In this document: piece by piece, positions 10,911 to 49,300 of the stretch
How the letters are laid out: every line of letters begins with the position of its first letter
Position numbering within the stretch: position 1 is the first letter of the stretch
DNA from: Macrostomum lignano
Taxonomy: Eukaryota
DNA: 64,000 nucleotides
Direction: 5' to 3'
Assembly: GCA_002269645.1 (NCBI GenBank)
Contig: NIVC01000342.1
Span: forward strand, 62,001-126,000
Notes under the pieces: model-generated
Told to the model about the DNA's origin: nothing
The model's input: only the letters and a program-made list of their open reading frames with translations
The model's database searches: none
Translations under genes and position numbers: made by a program

Positions 10911-12407
10911 AAAGTTTTATTAGTACTTTAGTACTATCACATCTCCACCAGTGGTCCTTGAGAGGACAGCACGTCACTGTGTCCAATCCCTAAGTTCTGG
11001 TACCTCAAAAACTACTGTTGCTATTCCGTTTGCCATGTAGATCCTCGTTAACAATTGCGCAGTTACACTTTGAGTTTGTTGTTTCTCTTGTTGTGGCCAG
11101 ACAGGGACTGCGTTCACTCGAAGCATATTGATACACTTTTGCGCATTGGGCTGCGAACCTGGACGCCTTGATGAAAACACGAACTCATTTCTTAACTTAA
11201 CAGTTTTTCTAAAGCCAAAGTTTTCGTTTTTGCCGTTCGGCTTTCAGTGTGTAAAAATTAACGTGAATTTTTTTCGAATTTTCACCATGTGCAGACAGCC
11301 GAGGCAGGCAGCTGCTAACGATGAAAATAGTTGCCTTTTCTGTATATTTCTACTCACAGTAGGGTATTACGGGTTGTACTGAATATTTTGTTTACAAAAC
11401 CTGGAAACCTGTAAGGAAAAGTGAATAATTGCAAGAAATAATTCTGAGATTAAGGATTTCAGTGATGAAGGATTTCAGTGGATAGGAGATTTCAGTGAGG
11501 ATGGATTCATCGAATAGGAATTTCTGTGAGCAAGGGCTATCTATCTGTGAATAGTATTTTCCATGAATACCAATTTCTGTGAATAGGAATTTCAGTGAGT
11601 AGTTGGAAACAGGAGATTATTCTAGTGTCAGCAAATGACCAGTGCAACCAGGCCTTTGATATAAAATGCAAAATTATATACACGCGCAAGTCCAGGCAAA
11701 CTCAAAATAAAGAGCACATTGAAACCGCCTACAATTAAGGTAGGATTCGCGATTACGCATATAATTTTTGACCGTTATAGTTGGAACTTCTCGGAAAGAA
11801 ATTCAACTCCAATTTTTGAAGATGTTGCAAATCTGAAATCTGTCGAAATAAAAACTTGAATTGTTAATTTGTAATTGTTTTGCTTTGGTCACGTAATTTT
11901 CATACTGCGTTGGTCCACGCGATTGAATTTCAAGCACACAAGGATCACTTTTCCTGTCCTGTCCACTTCACCCCTCGCCTCCCTATACGGCATACACAAA
12001 AGTAACGCCTCTAGCGAAGCGAGACCTAATTTAAATTTTAAATAGTTCAACAAGACCTTAACTGGCACCCAAAGTCAGATAACACTTCCCCGTTCCGCCC
12101 TTCCCCACGTTTCTATTCCATATGCACAGACTGCAGGCCCGGGTTTATTGCAGGGGGGTTGGGGATTGGGGGTTGGAGGGCGGTTTTTGAACTGCACATG
12201 AAGTTTCCAGTTGGGGGGGGTTGGCCCCACTCAGCCGCTATTGGCTGGCCCAGGACCCACCACCCACCCCACCCTCCTCCTTCATGGCTAAACTGTTATG
12301 GCGAGGGAACTATAAAACCAGCTTGGAAAACTGAAATCAAGGTTCACAGTCCAATTCCCAATCAATCCGGTGGATCTGAATTCTAATATTCGCTAAAAAC
12401 CAGCAAA

Positions 12408-18605: not shown

Positions 18606-19438
18606 NNNNNNNNNNNNNNNNNNNNNNNNNNNNNNNNNNNNNNNNNNNNNNNNNNNNNNNNNNNNNNNNNNNNNNNNNNNNNNNNNNNNNNNNNNNNNNN
18701 NNNNNNNNNNNNNNNNNNNNNNNNNNNNNNNNNNNNNNNNNNNNNNNNNNNNNNNNNNNNNNNNNNNNNNNNNNNNNNNNNNNNNNNNNNNNNNNNNNNN
18801 NNNNNNNNNNNNNNNNNNNNNNNNNNNNNNNNNNNNNNNNNNNNNNNNNNNNNNNNNNNNNNNNNNNNNNNNNNNNNNNNNNNNNNNNNNNNNNNNNNNN
18901 NNNNNNNNNNNNNNNNNNNNNNNNNNNNNNNNNNNNNNNNNNNNNNNNNNNNNNNNNNNNNNNNNNNNNNNNNNNNNNNNNNNNNNNNNNNNNNNNNNNN
19001 NNNNNNNNNNNNNNNNNNNNNNNNNNNNNNNNNNNNNNNNNNNNNNNNNNNNNNNNNNNNNNNNNNNNNNNNNNNNNNNNNNNNNNNNNNNNNNNNNNNN
19101 NNNNNNNNNNNNNNNNNNNNNNNNNNNNNNNNNNNNNNNNNNNNNNNNNNNNNNNNNNNNNNNNNNNNNNNNNNNNNNNNNNNNNNNNNNNNNNNNNNNN
19201 NNNNNNNNNNNNNNNNNNNNNNNNNNNNNNNNNNNNNNNNNNNNNNNNNNNNNNNNNNNNNNNNNNNNNNNNNNNNNNNNNNNNNNNNNNNNNNNNNNNN
19301 NNNNNNNNNNNNNNNNNNNNNNNNNNNNNNNNNNNNNNNNNNNNNNNNNNNNNNNNNNNNNNNNNNNNNNNNNNNNNNNNNNNNNNNNNNNNNNNNNNNN
19401 NNNNNNNNNNNNNNNNNNNNNNNNNNNNNNNNNNNNNN
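18606..19438. other. Assembly gap (N run)
   Basis: Run of N. Confidence 1.
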
Positions 19439-22500: not shown

Positions 22501-25236
22501 AAGTTAGGGCTTGTCAAGCTTGGTGTTTGTGAAGTTTAGGGCTTGTCAAGCTTGGTGTTTGTGAAGTATAGGGCTTGTCAAGCTTGGTGTTTGTGAAGTT
22601 TAGGGCTTGTCAAGCTTGGTGTTTGTGAAGTTTAGGGCTTGTCAAGCTTGGTGTTTGTGAAGTATAGGGCTTGTCAAGCTTGGTGTTTGTGAAGTTTAGG
22701 GCTTGTCAAGCTTGGTGTTTGTGAAGTATAGGGCTTGTCAAGCTTGGTGTTTGTGAAGTATAGGGCTTGTCAAGCTTGGTGTTTGTGAAGTTTAGGGCTT
22801 GTCAAGCTTGGTGTTTGTGAAGTTTAGGGCTTGTCAAGCTTGGTGTTTGTGAAGTATAGGGCTTGTCAAGCTTGGTGTTTGTGAAGTTTAGGGCTTGTCA
22901 AGCTTGGTGTTTGTGAAGTTTAGGGCTTGTCAAGCTTGGTGTTTGTGAAGTTTAGGGCTTGTCAAGCTTGGTGTTTGTGAAGTATAGGGCTTGTCAAGCT
23001 TGGTGTTTGTGAAGTTTAGGGCTTGTCAAGCTTGGTGTTTGTGAAGTATAGGGCTTGTCAAGCTTGGTGTTTGTGAAGTTTAGGGCTTGTCAAGCTTGGT
23101 GTTTGTGAAGTATAGGGCTTGTCAAGCTTGGTGTTTGTGAAGTTTAGGGCTTGTCAAGCTTGGTGTTTGTGAAGTATAGGGCTTGTCAAGCTTGTGCATG
23201 TAGAAAGTGGAGATTTCAGCTACGCATTTCCAACCCCTTAATCTAATTCTTCTTCTAAACCCCAAAACCTGACTAACCTGATTCTTCCACATGTTCAAAT
23301 CCAGACACATAACTACGAACAGTACTCCATAGTTGAACCATTTCCCGGTGATGTGCACCGTCCAAACGTCGTCGTCGACAATCCGTTTAAACCAGTCCGG
23401 TATGCGGATATCGAACGCGTAGATAGCTTTGGCTACGCCGGGCAGCCGAACGTCAAGGCTGTTAGTGAAGTTAGGAAAGTCCCAATCCTGCATGACAATC
23501 AGCAGGTCAAGGCTCAGAATTGATGCAGCTAAGAAAGCCCGCGACAGTTCGTTTGACGGAGCAAAGCCCCTGTTGAGGTAGTCCCAGCGGATGATGTCGG
23601 TGCAGATCACTGTGATAACGGTGGTGCACAAGCTGATTAGCAGCAGCCAGAACATGACGATCCGAGTGTAGCCAGAGCGCCACCACTGCCGGATGAAGCG
23701 GTTCCAGCTTGGATAAAGACGCTCCTGTAGCATCATGTCGCTCACCATCCAGGCGGTCATGAAGTCGCCAAGCCAGGTGCCTGTGGCTGCCATCTTCATG
23801 AACGTGGAGTTCTTGATGCCCATCTGCATACTGATGAGATAGGGGATGTTGGACGTGCCGCCGAGGGTCAGCAGGAAAGCGTTGTAAATGTTGGAGAAAA
23901 TGTACACGGATATGATGGTTGAGAACCACATTGTCATCCAGGAGCCTTCGTCGTTAGCAAACATTTTCAGCCGAAACCAACGGTCTGAAAGTTGTAGGTT
24001 TGTACAATTCTTGTTTAATACATCTTGGATATTTTTAGCCACCCAGCGAATTTGCCGATGATTCTGCCACTTCACCTAAACAATTTAAACAAATAAGCAA
24101 AGAGTTTGACTTAAGACAGTCTCACTGAACACAAATACGTGACACAGTTTTCCAGCGATGATGCCAACCAGGATTCCCAGCAGCCACATGATCACTTTGA
24201 GCAGACTCCATGCGTTGGGCGGATACCGGCTGAAAACGAATGCGAACACGTTGCCTAACACGGGGATGCTGCACACCTGCGACGAGTCGGCTATGGGATC
24301 CTCGGCGTAGATTAGGAAGTTAAGAAAAACGACTAGTAAAGTGCAGATCATGCGCAGGTAGGGATGCTGAAAGTAGAACCTAGCATCGTGCACCATGTAC
24401 AGCGAGTACTGGCTAAGCCGATCAATGTCTACGGGGTCAATGGTCGAGCTGAACGAGCCAGGCCGGTTCAGACAGGACGGCGTGTGCAAGTGCCGAGCCG
24501 ATGGCGAGCCCTGGGACCCATCGGCGCCGGTCGTCACCGGTGCCTGCGACCTGGATGATGACACAACCGAAGAAGAGTCATCGTTTTCAAAGATGTCCTT
24601 GTTATCGTTGGCGTTGTCGTCCTTGGTAGCCGACGTTGTTGATGGCTCAGCCACCTCCGTCTGTGTCTGTGACTCCGGTCCCGGCGCCGCGCTGTCCTTA
24701 ATGCCTTCAACGGAGTCGTCACCGACGGATGTCAATCTTCCACTGGCCTCGGCATCGTCGGCTGTTGCGGCGGCAGAAGCTGCCATTGCAGCAGCCGCAG
24801 CAGCCGCCTGAGCAGTCGATGGTACCGACATTTGGCGCCTGTGCCGCGCCGGAGGCCCACGCCGCCCGAGTTCGAAGACGACTCCACTTTCACCAGTGCC
24901 ACCGCCGCTGCTGCCATTGCCACCGTCAGCGATGTCAGACAGCTGGCGCATCAACGAACGCCGTCTGTACGATGTGGACTGATGTTCTTGGTGCTGCGCC
25001 AGTGCCTGTTGTTGCCTAGGCAACCTCTGCCCCGGCGTTGGGCTGCAAACTGCCGAGTTGGGCGCGGTTGGCCCAGTCCGCTTCTCACGCACCTTTAGCC
25101 GGCCGGCGTCGCGCCATTTGATTGACATCCGCCTAACCAACTCACGGTCGCTCAAGCTGGTTGCTAGGTCGACCATCTCAGCTGGCGGCTGCGGCTGCGT
25201 TGGCTCCGCGGAAGCCGCATGCTGCTGAGCAGCCAT
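19576..25236 (-). CDS. TMEM117: Transmembrane protein 117-like
   Basis: Exons at 25236-24126, 23984-23278 and 19923-19576, with GT-AG boundaries and consistent phases. Hallmark segments: FYFQHPYLRMICTLLVVFLNFLIYAEDP, RLKMFANDEGSWMTMWFST, DLLIVMQDWDFP, ITGKWFNYG, DLNMWKNQ-MIYSPCEYGQYVGP. Long low-complexity N-terminal extension. The C-terminus may extend further if there is an indel at ~19590 (see findings). Confidence 0.92.
20011..23193. repeat. 32-bp minisatellite (GGGCTTGTCAAGCTTGGTGTTTGTGAAGTWTA)n filling TMEM117 intron 2
   Basis: Directly visible, highly homogeneous, about 100 units. Confidence 0.98.
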
Positions 25237-31175: not shown

Positions 31176-31959
31176 GCAGCAGGGAGCACGACGTTTGCCC
31201 GCCGGAATTTTGCCCGCCGACGTTTGCCCGCCGGAAGTTTTCCCGCCGACGTTTGCCCGACGACGTTTGCCCGCCGACGCTTGCCTGTCGACGGTTGCCC
31301 GCCGACGTTTGCCTGTCGACGTTTGCCCGCCGACGTTTATTTTATTTTTTTAGAGGCAGGGGGGTTGTGTGCACCCTGGCGCATTTTTAGCGACATAGGC
31401 ACACAACCGGCGAGAGGCATTGCTGCCCATTTCGCCGACTCCCCTGAGCAGGCATACAAGCGCGCGGATACGTACGTAGGCACACACTCACACAGGAGTG
31501 TACAGTGGCCCTAACTTTATATTATCGTCAGGCATGTACACTTCACTGCGCCTTGGGGGGTTGGCTCTCAAGGCCGTTAATTGCACGAGCAGAGCTAAGC
31601 CGAGATTCCAATTCAGCCCCAAATTAATGTGACTGCGCTTGGAATCGAGCCTGGGTCGCTGGCACACCAGAGCAGCTGCGCTACCGCTGGTCTACGGCCC
31701 CCCAATGCCCACGGACGTTTGCCTGCCGACGTTTGCCCGCCGCAGTTTGCCCGCCGACGTTTGCCCGCCGGAATTTTGCCCGCCGACGTTTGCCCGCCGA
31801 AGTTTGTCCGCCGACGTTTGCCCGCCGAAGTTTGCCCGCCGACGTTTGCCCGCCGACGTTTGCCCGCCGAAGTTTGCCCGCTGATGTCTGCCCGCTGAAT
31901 GTTGCCCGCCGGAACGGCGGGCAAAGTTCCGGCAGGCAAATTTCGTAGCTCGCTGCTGC
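31176..31959. mobile_element. MITE-like element with imperfect TIRs and internal 14-bp (GACGTTTGCCCGCC)n arrays
   Basis: GCAGCAGGGAGCACG (31176-31190) versus CGTAGCTCGCTGCTGC (31944-31959); arrays at 31189-31336 and 31714-31910; perfect hairpin TTGCCCGCCG-GAA-CGGCGGGCAA at ~31901-31923. Confidence 0.5.
31340..31702 (-). mobile_element. tRNA-derived SINE nested in the 14-bp array element
   Basis: Minus-strand head GGGGCCGTAGACCAGCGGTAGCG...CCCAGGCTCGATTCC (A-box-like and B-box-like), A-rich tail at ~31337-31352, and a body homologous to 59714-59925, 38535-38650, 28440-28565 and 5535-5590. Confidence 0.7.
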
Positions 31960-32061
31960 ATGGCTACTGCCAGTGGCGCATTTCATTTGAGGGGCAAAAA
32001 TTCATTTCAAGAGTTGCCATTTCATGTGGGGGCTTGGTACAGAAAGGGAGATAGGGTGTGG

Positions 32062-32730
32062 TGTCACTGATAATGATTAAATGCCCCTGATAAGGATGCG
32101 GTGTCACTGATAAGGATGCGGTGTCACTGATAAGGATGCGGTGTCACTGATAAGGATGCGGTGTCACTGATAAGGATGCGGTGTCACTGATAAGGATGCG
32201 GTGTCACTGATAAGGATGCGGTGTCACTGATAAGGATGCGGTGTCACTGATAAGGATGCGGTGTCACTGATAAGGATGCGGTGTCACTGATAAGGATGCA
32301 GTGTCACTGATAAGGATGCAGTGTCACTGATAAGGATGCAGTGTCACTGATAAGGATGCAGTGTCACTGATAATCATTAAATGCCCCTGATAAGGATGCA
32401 GTGTCACTGATAAGGATGCAGTGTCACTGATAAGGATGCGGTGTCACTGATAAGGATGCAGTGTCACTGATAAGGATGCGGTGTCACTGATAAGGATGCA
32501 GTGTCACTGATAAGGATGCGGTGTCACTGATAAGGATGCAGTGTCACTGATAAGGATGTAGTGTCACTGATAAGGATGCGGTGTCACTGATAAGGATGCA
32601 GTGTCACTGATAAGGATGCGGTGTCACTGATAAGGATGCGGTGTCACTGATAAGGATGCAGTGTCACTGATAAGGATGCAGTGTCACTGATAAGGATGCG
32701 GTGTCACTGATAAGGATGCGGTGTCACTGA
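32062..32730. repeat. 20-bp minisatellite (GTGTCACTGATAAGGATGCR)n
   Basis: Directly visible. Confidence 0.97.
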
Positions 32731-33117
32731 TTAACGTGTAGCGTTAGGTTACCGCTACAAGCTTACGAGTGTATGTGGCACTTCGAAGATAGCTAGCAAA
32801 AGCGGGAGGTTTTTTGTATATTTTGTCATTGCGTTGGGGGCTATTTAGCGCTGGGGCGAACGAATAGTACAGAAGTGTCTATGGGTGAACTAAAGCGATT
32901 GGAATATAGAATAAGAAATAATTAGAATAAATGATGAATGCTTTGGTGCTGCTACAAGATACTCCCCCTTCCCCATAACGGAGTACTTCTAGGATTAAAA
33001 CAACGAATTAACAGGAGGGAAATTTGGGGTAACAGATTCATGGCGCTACTTCTCTAGAATCAAATTGTCAAGTGTAATCAAGGAGTGTAGAATCAAGTCA
33101 AGTCAAGAAGTGTAGAA

Positions 33118-36100
33118 TCAAGGTGTAAAGTATTTTATCGACGGCTGAGAGGCAAATCGAACATGGCGAGAACTTCTTGAACGAGTATTGGCGGCTGGTG
33201 AATCATTAGGCGGAGCAGTAGGCTCTGGAAGGGTCTCCGGTGGCGGCGGCGGTAGCGTAGCTGGTTTAAGTCGGTCGATTGACACTGTGGTGGGCCGGCC
33301 GTTGATCTCTAGCGTCATTGTTGTTTCATGTCTGCTAAGAACAGCGAACGGGCCTTGATAAGGTGCTTCAAGCGGACGCCTCACGCGATCTAACCGTAGC
33401 CACACGTGTGTGCAGGAGTCCAGCGCGGTCGGCATATGGGTGGGGACCGGACGAGTTCGCGGTAGGCGGTAGGGGAAAAACATTTGGTGGAGCTTGGTCG
33501 ATAGCTCTGTCAGAGTCGAAGTGTCGGCCACTACTTGCGGAACCATGGGTTGCTCTCCAGTAACAAGTGAGAAAGGTGATGATCCGGTTTCGTCCGCAAA
33601 GATACGCATTCCAAGAAGAACGAGAGGCAGTTGGCTCAACCAGTATTTTCCGCGTGCTTTTAGGCCCGTCTTCAACGTTCTATGAGCGCGTTCGACGATG
33701 CCGTTGGCTCGCGGATTGTATGAAGAAGTTCGGATATGGTGAACCCCCAGGTGCTGCGTCAGGTTTTGCATGAGCTCGGCTCGGAACTGCGTCCCTTGGT
33801 CGCTAATCAATGTAAGCGGTGGTCCGAAGCGGGCAATCCAGGATGCTAGGAAAGTCCGCGCGACGGTCTCAGCCGTGGTGTCCATGACGGGAGTAGCCTC
33901 GATCCAGCGTGTGTATGAATCCACCATGGTCAGCAGGTATCGGGGTTTTGGTCCAACCGCGTCGGATTCGGGCGGCGTCAATGGTCCGACTAGGTCGATG
34001 TGCACCGTCGTGAATCGTTGCGATGGTACTGGTAACTGGTGGAGCGGCCGGTGAATATGCTTGCTAACTTTGCATTGCTGGCAGCGCTCACATTCAGTGA
34101 CCCACTTCTTGATGTCGGCGAACATATTAGGCCAGAAAAAACGGTATCCGACAAGCCTCTGTGTCGCTTTTACTCCCGGGTGCGCCAAAGTGTGTAGCGA
34201 ATCAAACACTTTTCGGCGAAGCGGTCCTGGTACTTCAGGGCGTGGGTTGGCTTGTGAAGTCTCGCAGCGAAGCGGGCACTCTGGGATTCCGATGTCAAAG
34301 TGCTTGAACTGGCCGGCCGGAGTGTCTTCAGGCGTTAGATCTTTCTGAGCTCTTGCAATAGCCGGAAGGTCCACGGCTGTTGGGACATCTTCTAAGAGTC
34401 GCACGTTGTTGGTCTGGGTAACTGAGGATGGTTCTGGACGAGACAGTGCGTCGGCTACTACGTTGTCTTTACCGGCGATGTATACAATGTCGAGAACGTA
34501 CTCAGTTATCGCTGAAAGTTGGCGCTGTTGGCGGTCAGAGAAACGCTGTTTCCGATTCTTGAAAGCTCCCACGATTGGCTTGTGGTCACAGAACACCGTG
34601 ACAGGGCGACCTTGGACCATGTGCTTCCAGGTTTTGACGGCGGCGAAAATAGCCAGTAGTTCTCTGTCGAACGTGCTGTAGGCTCTCTCGGTATCCGACA
34701 GTTTGCGCGAGTAAAAAGCTAGGGGTGCAGACTTGTCGTCTACCACTTGATGTAGGGCTGCGCCTAAGGCCGTTGAGCTTGCGTCCGTAGTGATAGTGAG
34801 CGTTGCGCTAGGTTCGGGGAACGCTAAAGTTACGGCCTCAGCCAGGCTGTTTTGAAGCAGTTTCCAAGCTTCGTCATGCTGGTTCGTCCAGACGAACTGA
34901 CTCGAACTGACGAGTTGGCGAAGAGGCTGTACTACTTGGGCGTATGCGGGGATGCAACGTTGGTAGAAACCAAACATTCCCAGATAGCGCTGGAGCGTCT
35001 TTTGATCGGTCGGGGCCTGCAGTTTGCGAAGGGCCTCCACTCGAGTGGGAAGTGGCTTGATTCCCTCGGCTGATACGAGGTATCCCAGAAATTCCACTGA
35101 GTCTCGGAAGAACTGACACTTTGCTGCGTTAACCCTCAGACCTTTGTCCGTTAGACGCTGAAGGATGGCTTGCAGATGTTGCTCGTGTTCTTGTCGAGAA
35201 GTGCTGTGCACTAGGATGTCGTCGATGTATGAAACGACAAAGGGGAAATCTCGAAAGATTGCGTCGACGAACCTCTGGAACGTGCTAGCTGCGTTGCGCA
35301 GTCCGAAGGGCATTCGAAGGTATTCGAAAGATCCAAAAGGGGTGCAGATTGCGGTCTTTTCTATCGCGTCTTCAGCCATGGGGACGAAGTGATAGGCCTT
35401 GACGAGGTCAAGGGTGCTGAATACTTTCGACCCATGCAGCTGATTGTGGAAGTGGTTAATGTTCGGTATGGGGTACCGATCGGGCTTGGTCACGGCGTTC
35501 AAAGCTCGATAGTCACCACAAGGGCGCCAAGACCCGTCTTTTTTTCTCACCATATGAAGGGGCGATGCCCACGGGCTGGAAGATGGTCGGACGATTCCGA
35601 GTCGAAGCAGCTTGTCAAACTCTTCCTTTGCAACAGTGAACTTTTCCGGTGACAGTGGTCGTGGTCGGCAGAATATCGGCTCGCCTTCCGTTTCGATCGG
35701 ATGTCGGACGCCTGTTGCGGATGGGGTCGTGTAGTCGGGCGCCTCTAGTACGCGTGGAAACTGGGTGAGCGGGTTTGATGGTTCCATTTCCGTTGTCACG
35801 TTGATTTGTGGAACTGGATCGGAAGAGCAGTTCAGGGCTGTGGATAATTCCGTTACTGGGTCTGTGATGCGTCTCGACTTAAGGTCGATGATCAAACCGA
35901 ACTTTACGAAGAAATCCGCTCCGAGAATCGGTGCCGTATTAGTGACGATGAATGTTGCTGGGTATGGTCGCCGGAGCCCCGGAATAGAGAGAGTCAGGCA
36001 GCATTGTCCAAAGGTACGGATCTCGTGTCCACCAATGCTGCGCAACTTCACGGGTGTCGGAGTAAGCAGATTTTGAGGGACGTACTGTAGAGGCAGGAGT

Positions 36101-36207
36101 GACCGTTCGGCTCCAGTGTCAACAATAAATGAAACCATGGTGCGAAGAACGTTGCAACGGAGTAACAAAGTGGTGGCCTTGCTCTGGTCACGGGTCGGCC
36201 AGGGCAC
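33118..36207 (-). CDS. pol: Gypsy Pol polyprotein (protease, RT, RNase H, integrase)
   Basis: VDTGA protease; WRPCGDYRALN, MPFGLRNA and YIDD in RT; TDAS...DH...ADALSR in RNase H; HTLAH...CERC zinc finger; D,D(35)E core; GPF module. Uninterrupted 1029 aa. Confidence 0.97.
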   Translation of the reverse strand: MPWPTRDQSKATTLLLRCNVLRTMVSFIVDTGAERSLLPLQYVPQNLLTPTPVKLRSIGGHEIRTFGQCCLTLSIPGLRRPYPATFIVTNTAPILGADFFVKFGLIIDLKSRRITDPVTELSTALNCSSDPVPQINVTTEMEPSNPLTQFPRVLEAPDYTTPSATGVRHPIETEGEPIFCRPRPLSPEKFTVAKEEFDKLLRLGIVRPSSSPWASPLHMVRKKDGSWRPCGDYRALNAVTKPDRYPIPNINHFHNQLHGSKVFSTLDLVKAYHFVPMAEDAIEKTAICTPFGSFEYLRMPFGLRNAASTFQRFVDAIFRDFPFVVSYIDDILVHSTSRQEHEQHLQAILQRLTDKGLRVNAAKCQFFRDSVEFLGYLVSAEGIKPLPTRVEALRKLQAPTDQKTLQRYLGMFGFYQRCIPAYAQVVQPLRQLVSSSQFVWTNQHDEAWKLLQNSLAEAVTLAFPEPSATLTITTDASSTALGAALHQVVDDKSAPLAFYSRKLSDTERAYSTFDRELLAIFAAVKTWKHMVQGRPVTVFCDHKPIVGAFKNRKQRFSDRQQRQLSAITEYVLDIVYIAGKDNVVADALSRPEPSSVTQTNNVRLLEDVPTAVDLPAIARAQKDLTPEDTPAGQFKHFDIGIPECPLRCETSQANPRPEVPGPLRRKVFDSLHTLAHPGVKATQRLVGYRFFWPNMFADIKKWVTECERCQQCKVSKHIHRPLHQLPVPSQRFTTVHIDLVGPLTPPESDAVGPKPRYLLTMVDSYTRWIEATPVMDTTAETVARTFLASWIARFGPPLTLISDQGTQFRAELMQNLTQHLGVHHIRTSSYNPRANGIVERAHRTLKTGLKARGKYWLSQLPLVLLGMRIFADETGSSPFSLVTGEQPMVPQVVADTSTLTELSTKLHQMFFPYRLPRTRPVPTHMPTALDSCTHVWLRLDRVRRPLEAPYQGPFAVLSRHETTMTLEINGRPTTVSIDRLKPATLPPPPPETLPEPTAPPNDSPAANTRSRSSRHVRFASQPSIKYFTP

Positions 36208-36215
36208 GTGACCGA

Positions 36216-37064
36216 CTAGTTTGAAGCACTTTCTAGAGTTGGGCTGTTTGCACGCGAGTTATCTGGTGTGGTCTGGCGGCTGCTGAGCATCGTTGTGGGT
36301 TTGGGACCGGGCCATTTGCACCAAGGTCAGCACGTACGGGCTTGTGAAGCGTAGAATAGATGGCCATTACAGATCTTAGGTCTCTTACGATAGGATCGCT
36401 GTTGCCGGTGATCTCCTTCGTACGCCTGCCTAGGCTTGAACGCGCCGTGCGGTCTCGAATCCCTGGCTTCGGACGTGCGCTGAATGGGTAAAAACGGAGT
36501 TCGGCTGCCCGCGACGGCTAACATGCTGTCGGCGATTTTGGCGAAGTCTTCTAGCGGAGAGTTTTCATGACCGACCAACGCTGAACGGATGTGCGTTGGG
36601 AGCGCCGTGAGCAGGCGTGACTTGATGATAGACTCGTCGGCTGCTGAACCCACTTCGATGAAGCGGCGCTTAATGTCAGTTACCAATTGCGAAGGGCGTT
36701 TGTCGCCGAGTTCTACTGCTGCAAGGGCTTCCTCGATACGCTGGTGGCGGTTGGCGCGCAGTGAGTCTAGAACAGCTGTTTTGAGTCGGTTGTATTCGAC
36801 GATGTCTATGTCGATGTAGCAGGCAACATCCTCCGGGAGAGCGGCCAGTGCGTGGTGGAATTTGGTGCTGGCGGAGCTGATTCCAGCCAGGGTAAATTGT
36901 GATTCGAGTTGGCGGAACCAAATCTCGGGTGCTTGACGGTAGAACGGCGGTGGTCTAATTGTGGCGCGTTGTAACGACGCTACCGGTTCCGTTATGGCGT
37001 TCTCCGAAGAAGCTGCCGCAGGTGGAGTGTCTGATGGAGGTTGTTGACGTTGGGTGTCTTCCAT
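36216..37064 (-). CDS. gag: Gypsy Gag with an in-frame TGA at 36327-36329; the natural end is probably the TAG at 36216-36218
   Basis: PPFYRQAPEIWFRQLESQF, LGDKRPSQL and C-x2-H-x9-C-x3-C box. The frame stays open for 36 codons after the TGA, to ...ESASN*. Confidence 0.9.
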
Positions 37065-37705
37065 TTGTCGTAGTCGTCGAGTGTTGGGATTGCACGCTCT
37101 GCTACCAATTTGTAGCGTTAGGTTACCGCTACAAGCTTACGAGTGTATGTGGCACTTCGAAGATAGCTAGCAAAAGCGGGAGGTTTTTTGTATATTTTGT
37201 CATTGCGTTGGGGGCTATTTAGCGCTGGGGCGAACGAATAGTACAGAAGTGTCTATGGGTGAACTAAAGCGATTGGAATATAGAATAAGAAATAATTAGA
37301 ATAAATGATGAATGCTTTGGTGCTGCTACAAACGATTTCGGAAGGCCAGAATATCGTCATTTTTAAGACCAAATGTTTAGAAGAGGGTTTTTAAAATTTC
37401 TATTTCAGTCGAATCTCATTGGCCCACCGGCCGTGGATAAATACGACGGCAACGGGCGCGGGGCTGAGAGCGCAGACCCCACTGTTCCTTCTACTGCAAA
37501 CCTGTTGCTGAGGCAGAAAATTGAGTCAGTTGCTGCTCATCTATCAAATTTTAGGGAAGCTTTTTGCGCGTAAGTTTTCCATTTTGAAAAGAAGTCCTAC
37601 AGATAATAGGAAATAAAAAATCATAATTAATCACTTCCTGATAACTTTGCGCCTCTTCAGAAACCATCCGATCCGTTTGTCACTCGATCCACCTTTGTTC
37701 TCTTG

Positions 37706-39469
37706 ATGGCTGCACTGCTGAATGCCAAGTCCTGGGTGAGGCTGCTCGCCCTGCTGCTGGCCGCCTGCCACCTGTGCGAGCTCTGCTTTGTTGCCAACTG
37801 CCCACCTGGTGGCAAGAAGCGAAGCTTTCCCGGTGAGTGAATCTAGTATATGAAACTAGTGAGTGAAACTAGTGAGTAGAACTAGTGAGTGAAACTAGTG
37901 AGTAGAACTAGTGAGTGAAACTAGTGAATCTAGTGAGTGAAATTAGTGAGTGAGGGAAACTAGTGAGTGAATCTAGTAAATGAAACTAGTAAGTGAATCT
38001 AGTGAGTGAGTGAAACTAGTGAGTGAAACTAGTAAGAGCTAATTTGTACAAACTGTCAAGCTAAACAAAAGCGTTGAAGTTCTGGTGCTTTGCCTTTCTC
38101 GCCCTCCGTGATACAGAAGAGTGAAAATGAAATTAATTAGCCAGTGAATATCCCAGACAGCAGTCAAACATTCTCGCCCTCAATCCCAGTCTGCTTGAAT
38201 CCACATCAGGTGGAAATCACGGTTGCCTCATTCAAGCCTTAGCAGCCATTAATTTGATCGGGTTTCTTTCTCTCCGCAAGGGTTGAAAGTGTCGTGACCT
38301 CGTGTGGCAGGTGAAAATTTTTCCGATAGCTCGTGTAACTACAGAGCAATGATCAAACTTGATGACAAAAGATAGGCGCTGACGAATGCTTACAATTGCG
38401 CGGGCAGAGAAGTTCAGTGCTAGACGCGTCCGATTTTTGCGCCACGAGACCTGGTTCTGTGCTCAAACACATTCATTTGGGGCTCGTGTGCACGAAACTT
38501 GGCCTTGGGGATGTCGTGCGATCAACACTCATGAGGGCCAGCTTCCAGGGCACAAACAGTGTACATGCCTGACGATTAGAAAGTCAGGGCCGCTGTACAC
38601 CCTGTGTGAGCGTGCGTGCCTTCGTACAGTATTGACGCGTTCAGGAGTCAGCGGAATGGGCAGAATGTGGGAGGATGGGACGGTGAACCATGGCCCCCAA
38701 AGTAAACTCCGAAACAACATTGAAAAGTCGCGCCACCCTTTGCCCCAGTGAGCAGTGTCTTTCGACCAGCATCTTTCACCTGGCCAACCATTCTGATATT
38801 AATGCTTGAAAAACAATGAAAACCGGGTGGAAGCTTCAATCCATCCAATCTTCGTCCTTCGCTCTTCCCAATCCCTCGTCACTCAAAAGTCAATACCGAG
38901 CTAGAAGTTACTCCACACTCTCAAAGGTGGCGACTTTTTAATGCTGTGGAGTTTACTCATTGGTAGACAAACAAGTGTACACGCACGAATTTCACTCGCA
39001 CGACAGGCAAGCAGTTGAGCGCCTGCAAACCATCCTGCGGATCCGGCAAAGGCGTCTGCCTCGGTCGCAGCCTCTGCTGCGGCAACTTCGGCTGCATTGT
39101 GGGAAATGCGGCCAGGAAGGACTGCGCCGGAGCCGAGATGCGCGCCTTTCTCGGCCGGCTGACTTGTCGGCGCAGTCTGCCGCGGTGCGCTTCGGAGCGC
39201 GGCGGCCGCTGCTCCGCTCCTGGCGTCTGCTGCGACCTTGGTGCGTTTATAACCGGGGCTGAGTGCCGTGGTTTTGGTTTTGGTTTGGTTTTGTTCGTGT
39301 TTAGTCTTAATCCATTTCGCAAACTGTCATTGCACATTGCTCAGTAGTTTATACACAGCCCGAAGTCCTCTGAATAGTCTACGTTGGTTAAACAATTGCA
39401 GACTCGTGTCGCGCAGCCAAGGAGTGCAACGAATTCCGCTGGGGCAGGTCTACAGACGGTTCCGCTTGA
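37706..39469 (+). CDS. Oxytocin/vasopressin-family neuropeptide precursor (signal peptide, nonapeptide CFVANCPPG, GKKR, neurophysin), 142 aa
   Basis: Exons at 37706-37832, 39007-39240 and 39402-39469 (429 nt, both introns phase 1, GT-AG). Protein: MAALLNAKSWVRLLALLLAACHLCEL-CFVANCPPG-GKKR-SFPGKQLSACKPSCGSGKGVCLGRSLCCGNFGCIVGNAARKDCAGAEMRAFLGRLTCRRSLPRCASERGGRCSAPGVCCDLDSCRAAKECNEFRWGRSTDGSA*. The neurophysin has 14 Cys. AATAAA near 39532 and 39603. Confidence 0.93.
37845..38035. repeat. Degenerate (GAAACTAGTGAGT)-type short tandem repeat at the start of neuropeptide intron 1
   Basis: Directly visible. Confidence 0.85.
38535..38650 (+). mobile_element. Partial SINE copy in neuropeptide intron 1
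   Basis: CATGAGGGCCAGC...GTGTACATGCCTGACGATTAGA...CTGTACACCCTGTGTGAGCG matches the SINE body. Confidence 0.65.
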
Positions 39470-39737
39470 GCGATGATGAAGGCTGCCGTTCGAACTTTAA
39501 AGCTGCTGGAGGATTGTTTTTTACTGTCCTTAATAAAACCAATGGCTTAATTCGAACAAATAATAATTTGCCAATCATCAACTCGATCTGTCAGGCCTGA
39601 TAAATAAAACCAACTTGATGTCACCTCCATGACTGACTGGCCATTGCCAGCGATTCCAGCAGATTAAGGCTGTTGATATTCAGCTGTTTTGGGTTTCTTT
39701 ACAATGTTTGCTCATTGATATATCCATACTTACAGGG

Positions 39738-39739
39738 GC

Positions 39740-39803
<64 letters not shown>
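39738..39803. repeat. (CAGA)n microsatellite
   Basis: Directly visible. Confidence 0.97.
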
Positions 39804-39804
<1 letters not shown>

Positions 39805-40354
39805 GTTCATTAGAATTGGTTCAAAGCTGCAGAAATTTAATAATTTTCAGAAATTTTTCATTTCCGGACAGTGGAAAAGCATCAGTATTGTTTTATTTAA
39901 CGATTGTAATAAATTTTCTGGTGATAAAAGCGGACATGCTTAACATGCGTTTTGATTGCAGACTTTCCATATATGGTCTGATCTATGACTAATATTCTGG
40001 GGCTTTTGTATGCTGCTGCTGGTGACTGAGAATTACGACGGAAATGAAAAATCCTAGATTTTATTCAAAATTCTCACTGAATTCGAAAGCCAGAAAAACT
40101 TGTCGGCCAATTTGCTGAATGCAGTGATTGACAATAAATTGGTTTTATTTCTGCTGTGTCAGCAACAAAAATAATACGAGTATAGTTTCCCCGCACAGCG
40201 GATCATATCTGCGATGCTTTATAGTATGCCTCAGAAGGACCCTTTAGTGGGTGAGGTGATCTTATAAACAGGTAACTTTTTCCTGTTACTGCTCCAACGT
40301 TTATAGAGCGCTCTCAGCCTCGGACTATTTGAATGGCAACAAATATTTCATGAC

Positions 40355-41289: not shown

Positions 41290-41760
41290 GGAGGGTGCCG
41301 CTAAATCGACGGTCTTGAAATTTTTGCCAGCGCTAGGCGGAAGCTCGGGGTTGCCGCGAGTCGCCGTCGTGTCCGATTGCAGTCTCTGCGCGGAGATTTA
41401 TTTTTACATTATTCAGTTGCACATTCAAACTTGACTACTTGTTAGTAGAAAAGTTCGAAAGTAGACACTGAATTTTTATTGCTCTTATTATGACTTTATG
41501 TTTGCCACACCTGATGCAGAGCTCGGATGTTGACGGCGTGTCGCTTCTTTGAAGCCGCGTCGCCAGCCGCGACTGAGGCGGCCCCGGCCGGCAGCTTGCC
41601 TGTGCCCGTCAGCACGACGCTGCGCATCCTGCGGGATCCGGGGGGAGCGGGCGGCCCAGTGGCAGGTGATTCGCTAGATTGCTCATCCAAAGATGTCTAA
41701 TTAGGCTTCGGTTCAATGAGGTTTAATGGTCGATTTTATAAGGATCAACAAAGCGGCTTC

Positions 41761-43782
<2,022 letters not shown>

Positions 43783-46390: not shown

Positions 46391-49300
46391 CTTTGACTTA
46401 GCTGCAGGGCAGTCCGAAGACGCAGTGGGGAGGCGAAAGTCGCCCATTCCGCTAAACCCTGGTGACCCGCTTCGGCAATGGTGCGGGGCCAGTCAGGCGG
46501 TCCGCGAGTACGTATTCTCTTCGTTTGGGAAGAAAGAGGCTCGTCTAGTTGCCCGAAGGAACCGGACGAGCCGTGAGATGTTCTCAGGTCTACAAACGTC
46601 ATCGATAGATGGGTTTGGACCGAGGTGGTTAAGCCGCTCCCTGATGAAGAACGGGCATTGACAAACGAAATGCTGAGCATCTTCGTTGTCGTACTCGCAA
46701 AATGGGCACAGTTCATTCCGGATGTCGCCCCGGAGAAAGCAGTGCCTAGCGAAGCAGCCATGACCCGTGAGGGTCATAGCAAGAGCCCGGATGTCCTTCC
46801 TGCTTTGGTTCAGGAGGACAGTTCGGAGCTTTCGGGATGGACGAGCGACCGCCGCACGTGATTGGCGGCAGGTGGTCAGGTTCATCCATCTGTCCCTGTG
46901 CAGGTCGGAGGCCCAGGCATCAATGCTACGATTGATGGTGGCCGCAGGGATTGGAGCCAAGGGCAGAGGTCCCAGAAGGGAGCCGCTGCTCCCTTGCTTT
47001 GCAAGCGAGTCGGCCAGCTCGTTTCCAGGGAAACCCGCGTGACCTGAGATCCATTTGAGCTGGACAGCATTTTTGCGTCCCAGCGTAATGAGCATCCGGA
47101 CGCAGTCAGAGACCGTCCGGGAGGCCGTAGTGGTGTGACAGAGGGCTAGCAGAGCCGCCTGGCTGTCGGAGTGGAAAACGATAGTTTTACCGGAGGTGTT
47201 TTTGCTGCAAAGCTCTGCAGCGCAAGAGCTAATAGCAAGGACCTCGTTCTGGAAGACAGTAGAGAGTCTTCCAGTGTGCTGGGCATGCGTGGCGAGCACG
47301 CGGCCATTGATGAGAATGCAGACCCCAAAGCCGGAGAGCCAGTCTTTTAGGGATCCGTCTATGTAGCAGTGGACCTCCTGGGGATTCCAGTGGTCGTTAG
47401 CCTCCTCTGGAGGAGGAAGAATGACTTTGAATTGAAGACAGAGGTTGAGCGTTCGAGGTTCCCCGTCCGAAAGGACGTTGAGGCCGCCACTCTCCTGCAG
47501 ATCTTTGAGACAGAGGTCGGAATGAGACAAAAGCTTGCGCTTAGCCACTGCCCTCTGGGGCTTGAGAGTAATGCCGGTGTCGATGAGACGCCGGGCTGCT
47601 TTGGCTGCCTCCCTGCGGACGAAAATGTCCAGTGGAGGCAGGTCAAGGAAGGCGTTGAGGCCGTCGAAGGGAGCCGAGGGCGGGGCGCCCATCATCATTC
47701 GACATGCACGCCCCTGCACTCGTTTAAGAGCCTCGAAGCAGGTCTTAATCTGCAGGGCACTCGCCCAGATCAGTCCGGCATAGGAGATCGCCGGCCTGAC
47801 CATAGCAATGTAGATCCACCATAGGCGTTTGGGGGTAAGGCCCCAAGTATGGCCAACCGCCCTGCGCAGTTGCGCCAGGATCGCGAAGGCCTTTTTAGTC
47901 TTGGCATGAACATGCGGGGACCAGTTCAGCCTGTGATCAAGGGTGACCCCAAGACACTTGACTTGCTTACGGAAGGGGATTTCCTGTCCGTAGAGCGTGA
48001 GATGGCGGGATTGCCACTTCGTCCTGCTGGTGAACATAACCACAGCGGTCTTAGTCTCGGAGAGCTTCAGACCGCATTGGTCCGCCCAACGTTCAGCAGT
48101 GTTGATGAAGTTCTGAAGGAGATCACGCAGGGTGTCCGGCGATGGCCCAGAGGCTACCGCTGTGACATCGTCCGCATAACCGACCTTCAGAATAGGGTTA
48201 GGACAGGCGTCCCGTAGGAGCTCGTCGATAACCATGTTCCAGAGAATTGGAGAGAGAACACCACCCTGCGGACAGCCTTTGCAGACGGGAACCGTCCGTT
48301 CATGACCTAGCAGGTGTGCCGTAGCAGATCTGTGGCTAATCATGTACATGATCCAGCGCGTGAGGTGAGAATGTGTCATTCTCGTTTGTAGAAAAGGACG
48401 TTGTCAAAGGCTCCCACGATATCCAGGAAGACCGCTAGGGCATAGCCGTTGCACAAGCACAGCTTTCTCCAGCGTGTCCACCAGGATATGCAGCGCACTT
48501 TCGCTGGAGAGTCCCGCCCGAAAAGCATGCTGGTTTTTACTAAGCGGCATGTTCTTTAGTTCCACGGACTGCAGGCGCCAGAGCACCAGCCGTTCCATCA
48601 GTTTGACCATCGAGGAGGTCAAGCTGATTGGTCGAAAGGATTTAACAGAATGGTAGTCCGGGCGGCCGGGCTTAGGAATGAAAATCACCCTCACCTCAGT
48701 CCACGGCTTCGGGACACAACCAAACGTAATGCAGGCTTTAAGAAGCTTGCACAGGTGCATGAGGAACTTCTTGCATTGGACCGCCTCTCTGATTAGGGCT
48801 GGTACGATGCCTCGGGTCCAGGCGCCTTGTAAGGCTTGAAGGAGTTTGCAGCTTTGATGATGCGCTTCTTCGTGATAAAGGAGGAGGCAAGAAACGACCC
48901 GCCTTCGGCATGGTCCGAGGGGTCATTTGTGAGAGCCTCGTTGGGGAAGGAGGCTGAAAGCATAAGCTCTAGCGTCTCCCCAGGGTTCTCGATATGCGTG
49001 CCATCGGCCCGCTTTACCGAGGAAAGTTTGGATATTTTGTCCAAGGTCAGCGCTTTTACTATGCGGGATGTAGGGCGTGCGCCCTCCAGTTCCTCACAGT
49101 ATTCACGCCATTTGTTAGCCTTAGCGTTCCTGACTTCCTTTTTGAACTCATGAATTGCTTCAAGGTAGGCGGTCTCGCTGGGCGTTTAGATTTGGTGGCC
49201 CTGCGATGTAACCGTTTGGCTTTGCGGCGAAAGTCGCCACGCTTGGGGTTCCACCACGGGGCCGACGTTTTGCCCCCTGTAGGCTTTAAGCGGGCAGGAG

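Follow-up and report, generated by a model that had tools for sequence, protein, structure and literature searches.

Vasopressin/oxytocin (VP/OT)-type signalling was thought to have been lost in the Platyhelminthes until 2022 (PMC7181382; PMC8896804). The closest described system is platytocin of the polyclad Stylochoplana pusilla (precursor BCO16375.1; Kobayashi et al. 2022, PMC8896804), a peptide of sequence CFIRNCPPG with a deorphanised receptor and tested functions. The same study names four proteins of Macrostomum lignano (PAA85176.1, PAA50340.1, PAA46766.1 and PAA87831.1) as vasopressin/vasotocin precursors. Vasotocin-type peptides that likewise carry proline at position 8 occur in Platynereis (CFVRNCPPG) and tardigrades (CFVTNCPPG), both listed in PMC7181382, and in scallop (CFIRNCPPG) and tick (CFITNCPPG); their precursors share one architecture, with a neurophysin of 14 Cys. 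Vertebrate oxytocin/vasopressin-neurophysin precursors show the same hormone-GKR-neurophysin order and come from a three-exon gene.

The gene described here lies at 37706-39469 of the window (the whole 64,000-nucleotide stretch of M. lignano DNA that was analysed). We identify it, with a probability of roughly 0.93, as copy g2 (BOX15_Mlig003431g2, PAA85176.1) of the M. lignano VP/OT-type ("vasotocin-neurophysin", platytocin-like) preprohormone gene. GenBank PAA85176.1 has exactly the sequence of its 142-aa product, as does UniProt A0A1I8HHA6, named "Oxytocin", and the annotated GenBank gene for that protein covers the same 1764-nt span. This is a real VP/OT-type hormone gene, and it is already known. 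The original prediction was right in its central call of a three-exon VP/OT-type preprohormone and in making novelty conditional on a literature check. It had also called the gene hidden, which does not hold, since the exact protein is in both databases and is cited in PMC8896804. The proviso that the host be a flatworm is settled by the source, M. lignano, and the best relative outside Macrostomum is a flatworm too.

A HMMER search against 1.84 billion representatives returns 65 matches, nearly all of them VP/OT-type precursors. The top match outside Macrostomum is the platytocin precursor (E 3e-11, 35-38% identity), which has the same architecture as the M. lignano gene with all Cys conserved. 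One other candidate, a repetitive 1035-aa ENA ORF (P0006, E 6.5e-16), was rejected as a relative: it shows no Cys spacing of the neurophysin kind, and its match is probably an effect of composition. In text searches the strings CFVANCPPG, CFVANC and CFINNCPPG matched no paper (they may be printed within figures), the gene name Mlig003431 matched none in a literature search, and the supplements of PMC6188537 hold nothing on the peptide strings. What the present analysis adds is modest, namely the explicit peptides of both M. lignano paralogues, the Ala at position 4, the atypical Glu-Leu/Cys junction, the shifted intron 1, and a copy-specific retrotransposon insertion.

Gene structure and copies

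The features of the locus are as follows (a slash marks a splice or cleavage junction).

37661..37705, + strand: probable 5' UTR segment, directly after a pyrimidine-rich AG (ctcttcag/, AG at 37659-37660)
37706..37832, + strand: coding exon 1, 127 nt, donor G/gtgagt, phase 1
37706..37783, + strand: signal-peptide region, aa 1-26 (MAALLNAKSWVRLLALLLAACHLCEL), from the translation
37784..37810, + strand: nonapeptide CFVANCPPG, aa 27-35, from the translation; C-x4-C-P-x-G motif
37811..37822, + strand: GKKR, aa 36-39, amidation donor Gly plus Lys-Lys-Arg, from the translation
37833..39006, + strand: intron 1, 1174 nt, GT-AG, phase 1
39007..39240, + strand: coding exon 2, 234 nt, acceptor cag/, donor G/gtgcgt; neurophysin core, Cys1-Cys12 of 14
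39241..39401, + strand: intron 2, 161 nt, gtgcgt...cag, phase 1
39402..39469, + strand: coding exon 3, 68 nt, acceptor cag/; last two neurophysin Cys, short tail, stop
39532-39537 and 39603-39608, + strand: two AATAAA polyadenylation-signal motifs (motif match), 63 and 134 nt past the stop

The three coding exons (37706-37832, 39007-39240 and 39402-39469, + strand) join in frame to 429 nt, from an ATG at 37706 to a TGA at 39467-39469. The 142-aa translation runs from a hydrophobic leader through the nonapeptide and its processing site into the 14-Cys neurophysin (MAALLNAKSWVRLLALLLAACHLCEL-CFVANCPPG-GKKR-SFPGKQLSAC...), and the exon 3 tail of this precursor carries no copeptin-like extension. 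Re-translation bears out every sequence statement of the original prediction about the three-exon model, its coordinates, the hydrophobic leader, CFVANCPPG and GKKR. An older UniProt model, A0A1I8HIC0 (P0004), begins exactly at 37661 (KPSDPFVTRSTFVLL-M...), and the open frame extends further upstream; by its sequence context, the AG at 37659-37660 could be a candidate 5'-UTR or trans-splice acceptor. Intron 1 opens with a 13/26-nt tandem array of about 200 nt (37833-38035, found with TRF) that repeats the donor motif GTGAGT. Of the 23 GTGAGT sites in the window 12 fall in this array; the counts in the paralogous copies are 35 and 23.

Both introns are GT-AG and both are phase 1 in the joined CDS, just as predicted, and exon 2 does stop just after the second CC of the neurophysin, at the third codon past it. 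The second of these positions is conserved: intron 2 has the same site (the CC+3 codon) and phase in the second M. lignano gene, Mlig001406, in the gastropod Gigantopelta aegis and in the tardigrade Hypsibius exemplaris. The first is not. In the gastropod and tardigrade genes mapped, the canonical intron 1 is phase 0 and sits immediately before the first neurophysin Cys, and the same phase-0 intron 1 followed by a phase-1 intron 2 has been reported for deuterostomes (PMC10532012). Intron 1 of the present gene, in contrast, is phase 1 and lies 17 nt upstream of that site; it follows the dibasic site by 3 1/3 codons, as does intron 1 of the second M. lignano gene. Of the two phase-1 introns only intron 2 is conserved, and intron 1 departs from the canonical layout; the displaced intron 1 is read, by sequence comparison, as a Macrostomum-lineage intron shift.

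Database models disagree on the end of exon 1. An in-frame alternative donor, G/gtggca, also phase 1, lies 24 nt upstream and would end exon 1 at 37808. Model A0A1I8HIC0 uses exactly this junction and so lacks GGKKRSFP. Were transcripts to take it, they would encode a hormone-neurophysin fusion (...CPPGKQLSAC...) with neither a dibasic site nor an amidation signal, an isoform that frees no nonapeptide. We consider this very improbable as an account of the locus: as a donor gtggca is inferior to the consensus gtgagt found at 37833, the five other models (one from UniProt and four from GenBank, one per copy) place the end of exon 1 at 37832, and GKKR and the Ser after it have counterparts in the paralogue and in platytocin, which would be unexpected if those residues were intronic.

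The gene with exon 1 ending at 37832 is present in M. lignano as four near-identical genomic copies, so that in a recently duplicated genome g2, or some of the four, might be a silent or decaying duplicate, with the peptide made from other copies only. Two features besides the copy number speak for such decay. In copy g4, exon 2 has a +1/-1 indel pair through which 24 residues are changed and two Cys lost, and the window copy, alone among the four, has an LTR retrotransposon 375 bp upstream of its ATG; the two LTRs are 100% identical, and so young an element might disturb the g2 promoter. On the other hand, the g4 indels sit within G/C runs, in an assembly of long reads, and could be sequencing errors, and the other copies share the conserved 375-bp stretch that separates the LTR from the ATG in g2. 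The g2 reading frame, splice sites and 14 Cys are all intact. Exon 3 is 100% identical across all four copies, and exons in general diverge by 0.9-1.6% versus 2.6-5.1% for introns, 3-4 times less (Fisher p = 0.054, 1.3e-4 and 1.5e-3). Between g2 and g1/g3 there are 2 synonymous and 2 non-synonymous differences and one codon indel, too few for dN/dS; the variants specific to g2 are GAE-MRAF instead of GADEMRAF and CASERGG instead of CTLERGG. A silent g2 is, on balance, unlikely, and we continue to treat it as an intact hormone gene.

A second M. lignano gene, BOX15_Mlig001406g1 (PAA87831.1), encodes CFINNCPPG followed by GKR, at about 46-50% identity to the present precursor. Its three exons are arranged likewise, with two phase-1 introns at matching relative positions; the Glu-Leu pair before Cys1 is shared, and so is an F-box-like neighbour, downstream and on the opposite strand at each locus. 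It differs in having Ile-Asn at positions 3-4 (Val-Ala here), in using GKR instead of GKKR, and in an intron 1 without the tandem array of donor motifs.

Nonapeptide, neurophysin and leader

Among 56 other representative precursors, C1, C6 and G9 of the nonapeptide are found in 56, P7 in 55 and N5 in 52; in an alignment of 36 family sequences C1, C6, P7 and G9 are likewise invariant or nearly so. The peptide had been described as unusual. This is right for Ala at position 4, seen in 0/56, and wrong for Pro8, which with 15/56 is the commonest residue at its position. CFVANCPPG and platytocin agree at 7/9 positions, differing at position 3 (Ile there, Val here) and position 4 (Arg there, Ala here); the other Pro8 peptides listed above are one or two substitutions away, with Arg or Thr at position 4. 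Vertebrate hormones have Tyr at position 2, where Phe is found here. The lack of charged side chains, given as a further peculiarity, is true of CFVANCPPG but ordinary, being found in CFITNCPPG and in oxytocin. Nor is GKKR the departure it was taken for: it is the rarer form (2/56, against 51/56 for GKR and 1/56 for GRKR), but the platytocin precursor has it too. The Pfam model Hormone_4 (PF00220) is unreported even at E<=10, which for a model of 9 positions is uninformative, as weak matches are discarded by the HMMER filters. The motif C-x4-C-P-x-G-G-K-K-R was for this reason inspected directly.

The neurophysin identification is supported by model, sequence and fold. Pfam Hormone_5 (PF00184), the check that the original prediction had proposed, scores 55.9 bits (E 7.8e-15), where the gathering cut-off is 27.2, and covers positions 2-79 of 79, and bovine neurophysin II in PDB is matched by sequence at E 5.6e-8, values far removed from chance. 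GKKR is followed by exactly 14 Cys, each aligned to a Cys column that is invariant or nearly so among 36 precursors, and that alignment keeps every Cys of both the hormone and the neurophysin. In an AlphaFold model the neurophysin core has a pLDDT of 82-88, and the best 10 fold matches in PDB are all bovine neurophysins, although at TM-scores of only about 0.4. The hormone region of the model continues the leader helix at pLDDT <50 and is uninformative on docking of the hormone in neurophysin.

Compared with vertebrate precursors, which go on into a copeptin absent here, the loops between Cys are respaced: x3/x6 versus x2/x7 at the start, x4 versus x5 after the first CC, x7 versus x5 before Cys10, and x13 versus x9 in the loop between Cys7 and Cys8. 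This last loop reads C-AGAEMRAFLGRLT-C here and C-QEENYLPSP-C in the bovine protein, where it holds the hormone-binding Glu of the crystal structures, Glu47 of neurophysin II. A Glu is present in the M. lignano loop, offset by one residue, and the loop is 4 residues longer, whereas platytocin neurophysin retains the C-x2-E-N loop. The equivalent loop of the second paralogue has no acidic residue. A longer loop with an offset Glu weighs against a standard VP/OT-type reading.

The leader has a charged n-region (K8, R12), an h-region LLALLLAA, and a c-region with 3 Cys that ends in Glu-Leu, so that the junction before the hormone is CEL/C, compared with the canonical signal-peptidase site VIS/C of platytocin. 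At -1 the 56 other precursors have Ala (33), Ser (10), Gly (9), Thr (3) or Leu (1, in the second M. lignano gene). Judged against these homologues, Leu at -1 is atypical for signal peptidase, and the mature N-terminus is therefore insecure. A crude -7..-1 cleavage-site matrix, built from 53 homologous leaders, dominated by hydrophobic positions and recovering the known site in 41/53 training cases, finds no clear site in the leader of this gene.

The same gene could in that case yield a different product, through cleavage upstream of Glu-Leu (after HLC here, after SLA in the paralogue): an 11-mer, ELCFVANCPPG-NH2, possibly with a pyroglutamate, whose binding to neurophysin and receptor would be altered. 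Leu(-1) is confined to the two M. lignano genes among 57, and Glu-Leu is the sole part of the leader kept between these paralogues. SLA/EL in the paralogue is a textbook -3/-1 site that scores +4.7 bits against -2.5 for the position before Cys1 in the crude matrix, and, as described above, the neurophysin has a diverged loop at the place that would ordinarily bind Cys1 through its free alpha-amino group, in the paralogue with no acidic residue at all. We nonetheless think an 11-mer improbable. HLC/EL has His at -3 and is likewise a poor site, and the matrix is too crude to name a clear winner. Every characterised VP/OT-family hormone known to us starts at Cys1, and neurophysin binding requires a free amino group there. 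A nonapeptide beginning at Cys1 is the product carried forward below.

Proposed processing and significance

The steps of processing and action are drawn from the well-studied pathway of the VP/OT family. The leader would direct the precursor to the ER and then be removed, the Cys1-Cys6 ring would form, and the neurophysin, with seven disulfides, would chaperone the hormone into dense-core vesicles. A prohormone convertase would cleave after Lys-Lys-Arg, an enzyme of the carboxypeptidase E type would trim the basic residues, and peptidylglycine alpha-amidating monooxygenase would turn the extra Gly into a C-terminal amide. The product would be cyclic CFVANCPPG-NH2, with a calculated monoisotopic mass of 903.37 Da. 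A few neurosecretory neurons would presumably release it, and it would act through a GPCR of the rhodopsin type. If it resembles the platytocin of polyclads in function, the hormone would have a part in regulating water balance, egg laying or chemosensory behaviour.

According to PMC8896804, M. lignano has no clear VP/OT-receptor orthologue, a point against the main reading. Taken together with the conserved Glu-Leu and the remodelled neurophysin loop, this raises the idea that Macrostomum may make peptides with an N-terminal extension, (p)ELCFVANCPPG-NH2 and ELCFINNCPPG-NH2, acting via a diverged or non-orthologous receptor. We hold this to be quite unlikely; if true, it would represent a lineage-specific rewiring of an extremely conservative hormone system.

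Among flatworms other than polyclads, VP/OT-type precursors are, to our knowledge, reported from M. lignano alone, and this species is genetically tractable, by transgenesis and RNAi. The gene gives a handle on the role of the hormone in osmoregulation or reproduction in a macrostomid, and on the receptor it uses. That value is independent of the present analysis, because the gene was already public and cited.

A VP/OT-type preprohormone gene and its precursor

The gene BOX15_Mlig003431g2 has three coding exons, and exact re-reading of the region agrees with the original prediction on coordinates, exon borders and phase-1 introns.

37706-37832 (+): coding exon 1, 127 nt, ATG at 37706, donor G/gtgagt
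39007-39240 (+): coding exon 2, acceptor cag/, donor G/gtgcgt
39402-39469 (+): coding exon 3, TGA stop at 39467-39469

The two introns have GT-AG borders, each in phase 1. The spliced CDS (429 nt) encodes 142 aa in the order MAALLNAKSWVRLLALLLAACHLCEL, CFVANCPPG, GKKR and a C-terminal part of 103 aa. This last part contains exactly 14 Cys, as predicted for a neurophysin, and the Pfam model Hormone_5 (neurophysin) scores 55.9 bits (gathering cut-off 27.2), with 78 of 79 model positions aligned. Of the two HMMs proposed at the outset, the other, the 9-position model Hormone_4, reported no match; the nonapeptide motif was therefore inspected directly. Bovine neurophysins in the PDB match the precursor (E 5.6e-8). 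An AlphaFold model, with a 36-sequence alignment as input, has a mean pLDDT of 71.8 (82-88 in the neurophysin core), and its best 10 PDB fold matches are all neurophysins, though at TM-scores of only about 0.4. The assignment as an OT/VP-type preprohormone gene is supported.

Contrary to what had been claimed, the gene is not hidden, since an annotated gene on NIVC01000342.1 (GCA_002269645.1), of which the window is positions 62001-126000, has the same 1764-nt span. A similarity search found a Macrostomum lignano protein 98% identical to the product, and exact-sequence look-up found the product itself as GenBank PAA85176.1 ("hypothetical protein BOX15_Mlig003431g2") and UniProt A0A1I8HHA6, named "Oxytocin". 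Novelty, which the original prediction had made conditional on a literature check, is gone: PAA85176.1 is cited as a VP/OT-type precursor in the 2022 literature. The study that characterised "platytocin" of polyclad flatworms (Kobayashi et al. 2022, Sci Adv, PMC8896804) reported finding no clear receptor orthologue in M. lignano. The strings CFVANCPPG and CFINNCPPG (the latter from a second M. lignano gene) are absent from the searchable full texts. The gene is thus published, and a written-out or discussed peptide was not found.

An older UniProt model, A0A1I8HIC0, ends exon 1 at 37808, at an in-frame donor (G/gtggca) 24 nt upstream, which would remove GGKKRSFP and hence the processing site. 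The donor at 37833 fits the consensus, GK(K)RS is conserved and five other database models speak against the upstream donor, all of which argues that its use is minor or artefactual. A tandem array (37833-38035, 13/26-nt unit) occupies the start of intron 1, exactly from the splice donor of exon 1 onwards; it repeats the donor motif GTGAGT, and 12 of the 23 such sites in the window fall within it. Read-through at the donor runs straight into an in-frame TGA (...SFPGE*); a transcript retaining the intron would then still encode leader, hormone and GKKR but lack neurophysin.

Relatives and the mature peptide

An exhaustive HMMER search with the precursor gave 65 matches. The second best, PAA87831.1 (BOX15_Mlig001406g1), is a divergent M. 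lignano paralogue of about 46-50% identity that encodes CFINNCPPG and GKR and lacks the intron-1 GTGAGT array. The best match outside Macrostomum, BCO16375.1 ("oxytocin/vasopressin-like peptide [Stylochoplana pusilla]"), is the platytocin precursor; it encodes CFIRNCPPG and GKKR, sharing GKKR and Pro8 with the window gene. One further match, a 1035-aa ENA ORF from outside the window (E 6.5e-16), was rejected as an apparent artefact of composition or tandem repeats: it is highly repetitive (a 68-aa unit about 15 times), shares nothing but short strings such as CRRSLP with the precursor and does not show the Cys pattern of a neurophysin.

The peptide was compared with the nonapeptides of 56 further representative precursors. 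Residue 4 is never Ala among them (Thr 27, Gln 14, Arg 9, Ser 4, Asn 1, Ile 1); in the family at large it belongs to the two positions that vary most and best tolerate substitution. Pro is the commonest residue at position 8 (Pro 15, Arg 14, Ile 10, Leu 7, others), and oxytocin and CFITNCPPG are likewise without charged side chains. Ala4 is therefore the sole unprecedented residue, and the peptide is unusual, as first described, in this respect but not in Pro8 or lack of charge. The nearest of the 56 is the tardigrade CFVTNCPPG (one change); CFINNCPPG, CFIRNCPPG, CFITNCPPG and annetocin CFVRNCPTG differ by two. Platynereis CFVRNCPPG, listed in a review (PMC7181382), also differs by one. GKR is indeed the usual processing site (51 of 56; GKKR 2, GRKR 1), but the GKKR singled out earlier is shared with platytocin.

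The residue before Cys1 is Leu. Among the 56 precursors it is Ala in 33, Ser in 10, Gly in 9, Thr in 3 and Leu in one, which is the other M. lignano gene; Glu-Leu precedes Cys1 in both Macrostomum genes, while the remaining leader differs between them. SLA/EL in the Mlig001406 paralogue is a textbook -3/-1 site; a home-made signal-cleavage scoring matrix gave no decisive site. The mature peptide may thus be a Glu-Leu-extended form or CFVANCPPG-NH2, the latter being favoured because in all characterised members of the family the hormone starts at Cys1. Bovine neurophysin has a loop with the hormone-binding Glu; in the window precursor this loop is four residues longer and the Glu is offset by one position, and in the paralogue the corresponding loop has no acidic residue.

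Introns, copies and surroundings

Exact spliced matching was used to map three other genes: Mlig001406 and those of the gastropod Gigantopelta aegis and the tardigrade Hypsibius exemplaris. Mlig001406 has the window gene's layout, with a phase-1 intron 1 lying 3 1/3 codons downstream of the dibasic site and a phase-1 intron 2 in the third codon past the second CC. The gastropod and tardigrade share the codon and phase of intron 2, whereas their intron 1 is phase 0, directly in front of the first Cys of neurophysin (RQ^C). Deuterostome genes are likewise reported to have a phase-0 first and a phase-1 second intron (PMC10532012). On all these comparisons, intron 2 is ancestral. The layout originally put forward as that of the family holds for intron 2; the phase-1 intron 1 is noncanonical, and this comparison of gene structures indicates that it shifted (by 17 nt in the window gene) within the Macrostomum lineage, ahead of the split between the two paralogues.

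The Mlig003431 gene occupies four loci in the assembly, the window and three others (L001-L003). Identity among copies is 97.4-100% in exons and 94.8-97.8% in introns; the lower exon mismatch (0.9-1.6% vs 2.6-5.1%; Fisher p = 0.054, 1.3e-4, 1.5e-3) fits a constraint on coding sequence. The window copy differs from copies g1 and g3 by one codon indel (GAE-M vs GADEM) and in a variable loop (Ala/Ser vs Thr/Leu). Exon 2 of copy g4 (L003 10001-11710, PAA46766.1) carries a +1 G insertion and, about 70 nt downstream, a -1 deletion, both in G/C runs, which together rewrite 24 residues and lose two Cys of the neurophysin. Either the copy is decaying or a pseudogene, with a compensated frameshift, or the indels are homopolymer errors of the long-read assembly. 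The GTGAGT array has 12 copies in the window, 35 in L001 and 23 in L002 and L003.

In each of the four copies, the hormone gene has a TMEM117-family gene upstream of it (23122-25236, - in the window; Pfam E 3.7e-98 and 1.2e-30 for its two large exonic ORFs). Downstream, on the opposite strand, a gene with an F-box-like motif (41700-42900, -) is weakly similar (38% over 81 aa) to an F-box gene downstream of Mlig001406 (9619-12406, -, of its locus L005). This microsynteny suggests that the two hormone genes arose by segmental or whole-genome duplication.

A complete-looking Ty3/gypsy-type LTR retrotransposon (32737-37331, -) ends just 375 bp upstream of the hormone-gene ATG in the window copy. 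The element is missing from the three paralogous loci: homology to them stops at about 32731-32736 and picks up again at 37331/37332. Given this absence and the identical LTRs, the insertion is very recent.

18606-19438: assembly gap, 833 N
31181-31931: 14-nt tandem array, adjoining the insertion site; also in paralogous loci
31913-32790: long 20-nt minisatellite (>34 overlapping 300-nt copies), adjoining the insertion site; also in paralogous loci
32737-32957 and 37111-37331 (-): LTRs, 221 nt each, 100% identical
33118-36207 (-): open pol ORF, 1029 aa (protease, RT, RNase H, integrase)
36327-37064 (-): gag-like ORF, DUF7041
39739-39805: perfect (CAGA)17 microsatellite, 270 nt past the hormone-gene stop codon
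40356-40760: 34-nt tandem repeat
46493-48379 (-): second reverse-transcriptase/RNase H ORF, truncated, 628 aa

Proposed maturation and remaining interest

By analogy with the family, the precursor would enter the ER and lose its leader, the Cys1-Cys6 ring would form, and neurophysin would assist sorting into dense-core vesicles. A convertase would cut after KKR, followed by carboxypeptidase trimming, and the extra Gly would be converted to the amide on Gly9. The peptide would then be released from neurosecretory cells to act on a rhodopsin-type GPCR. Its roles, as for platytocin (PMC8896804), likely include water balance, egg laying and chemosensory behaviour. The interest that remains is small, and lies in Ala4, the Glu-Leu/Cys junction, the shifted intron 1, the two divergent paralogues and the missing receptor.
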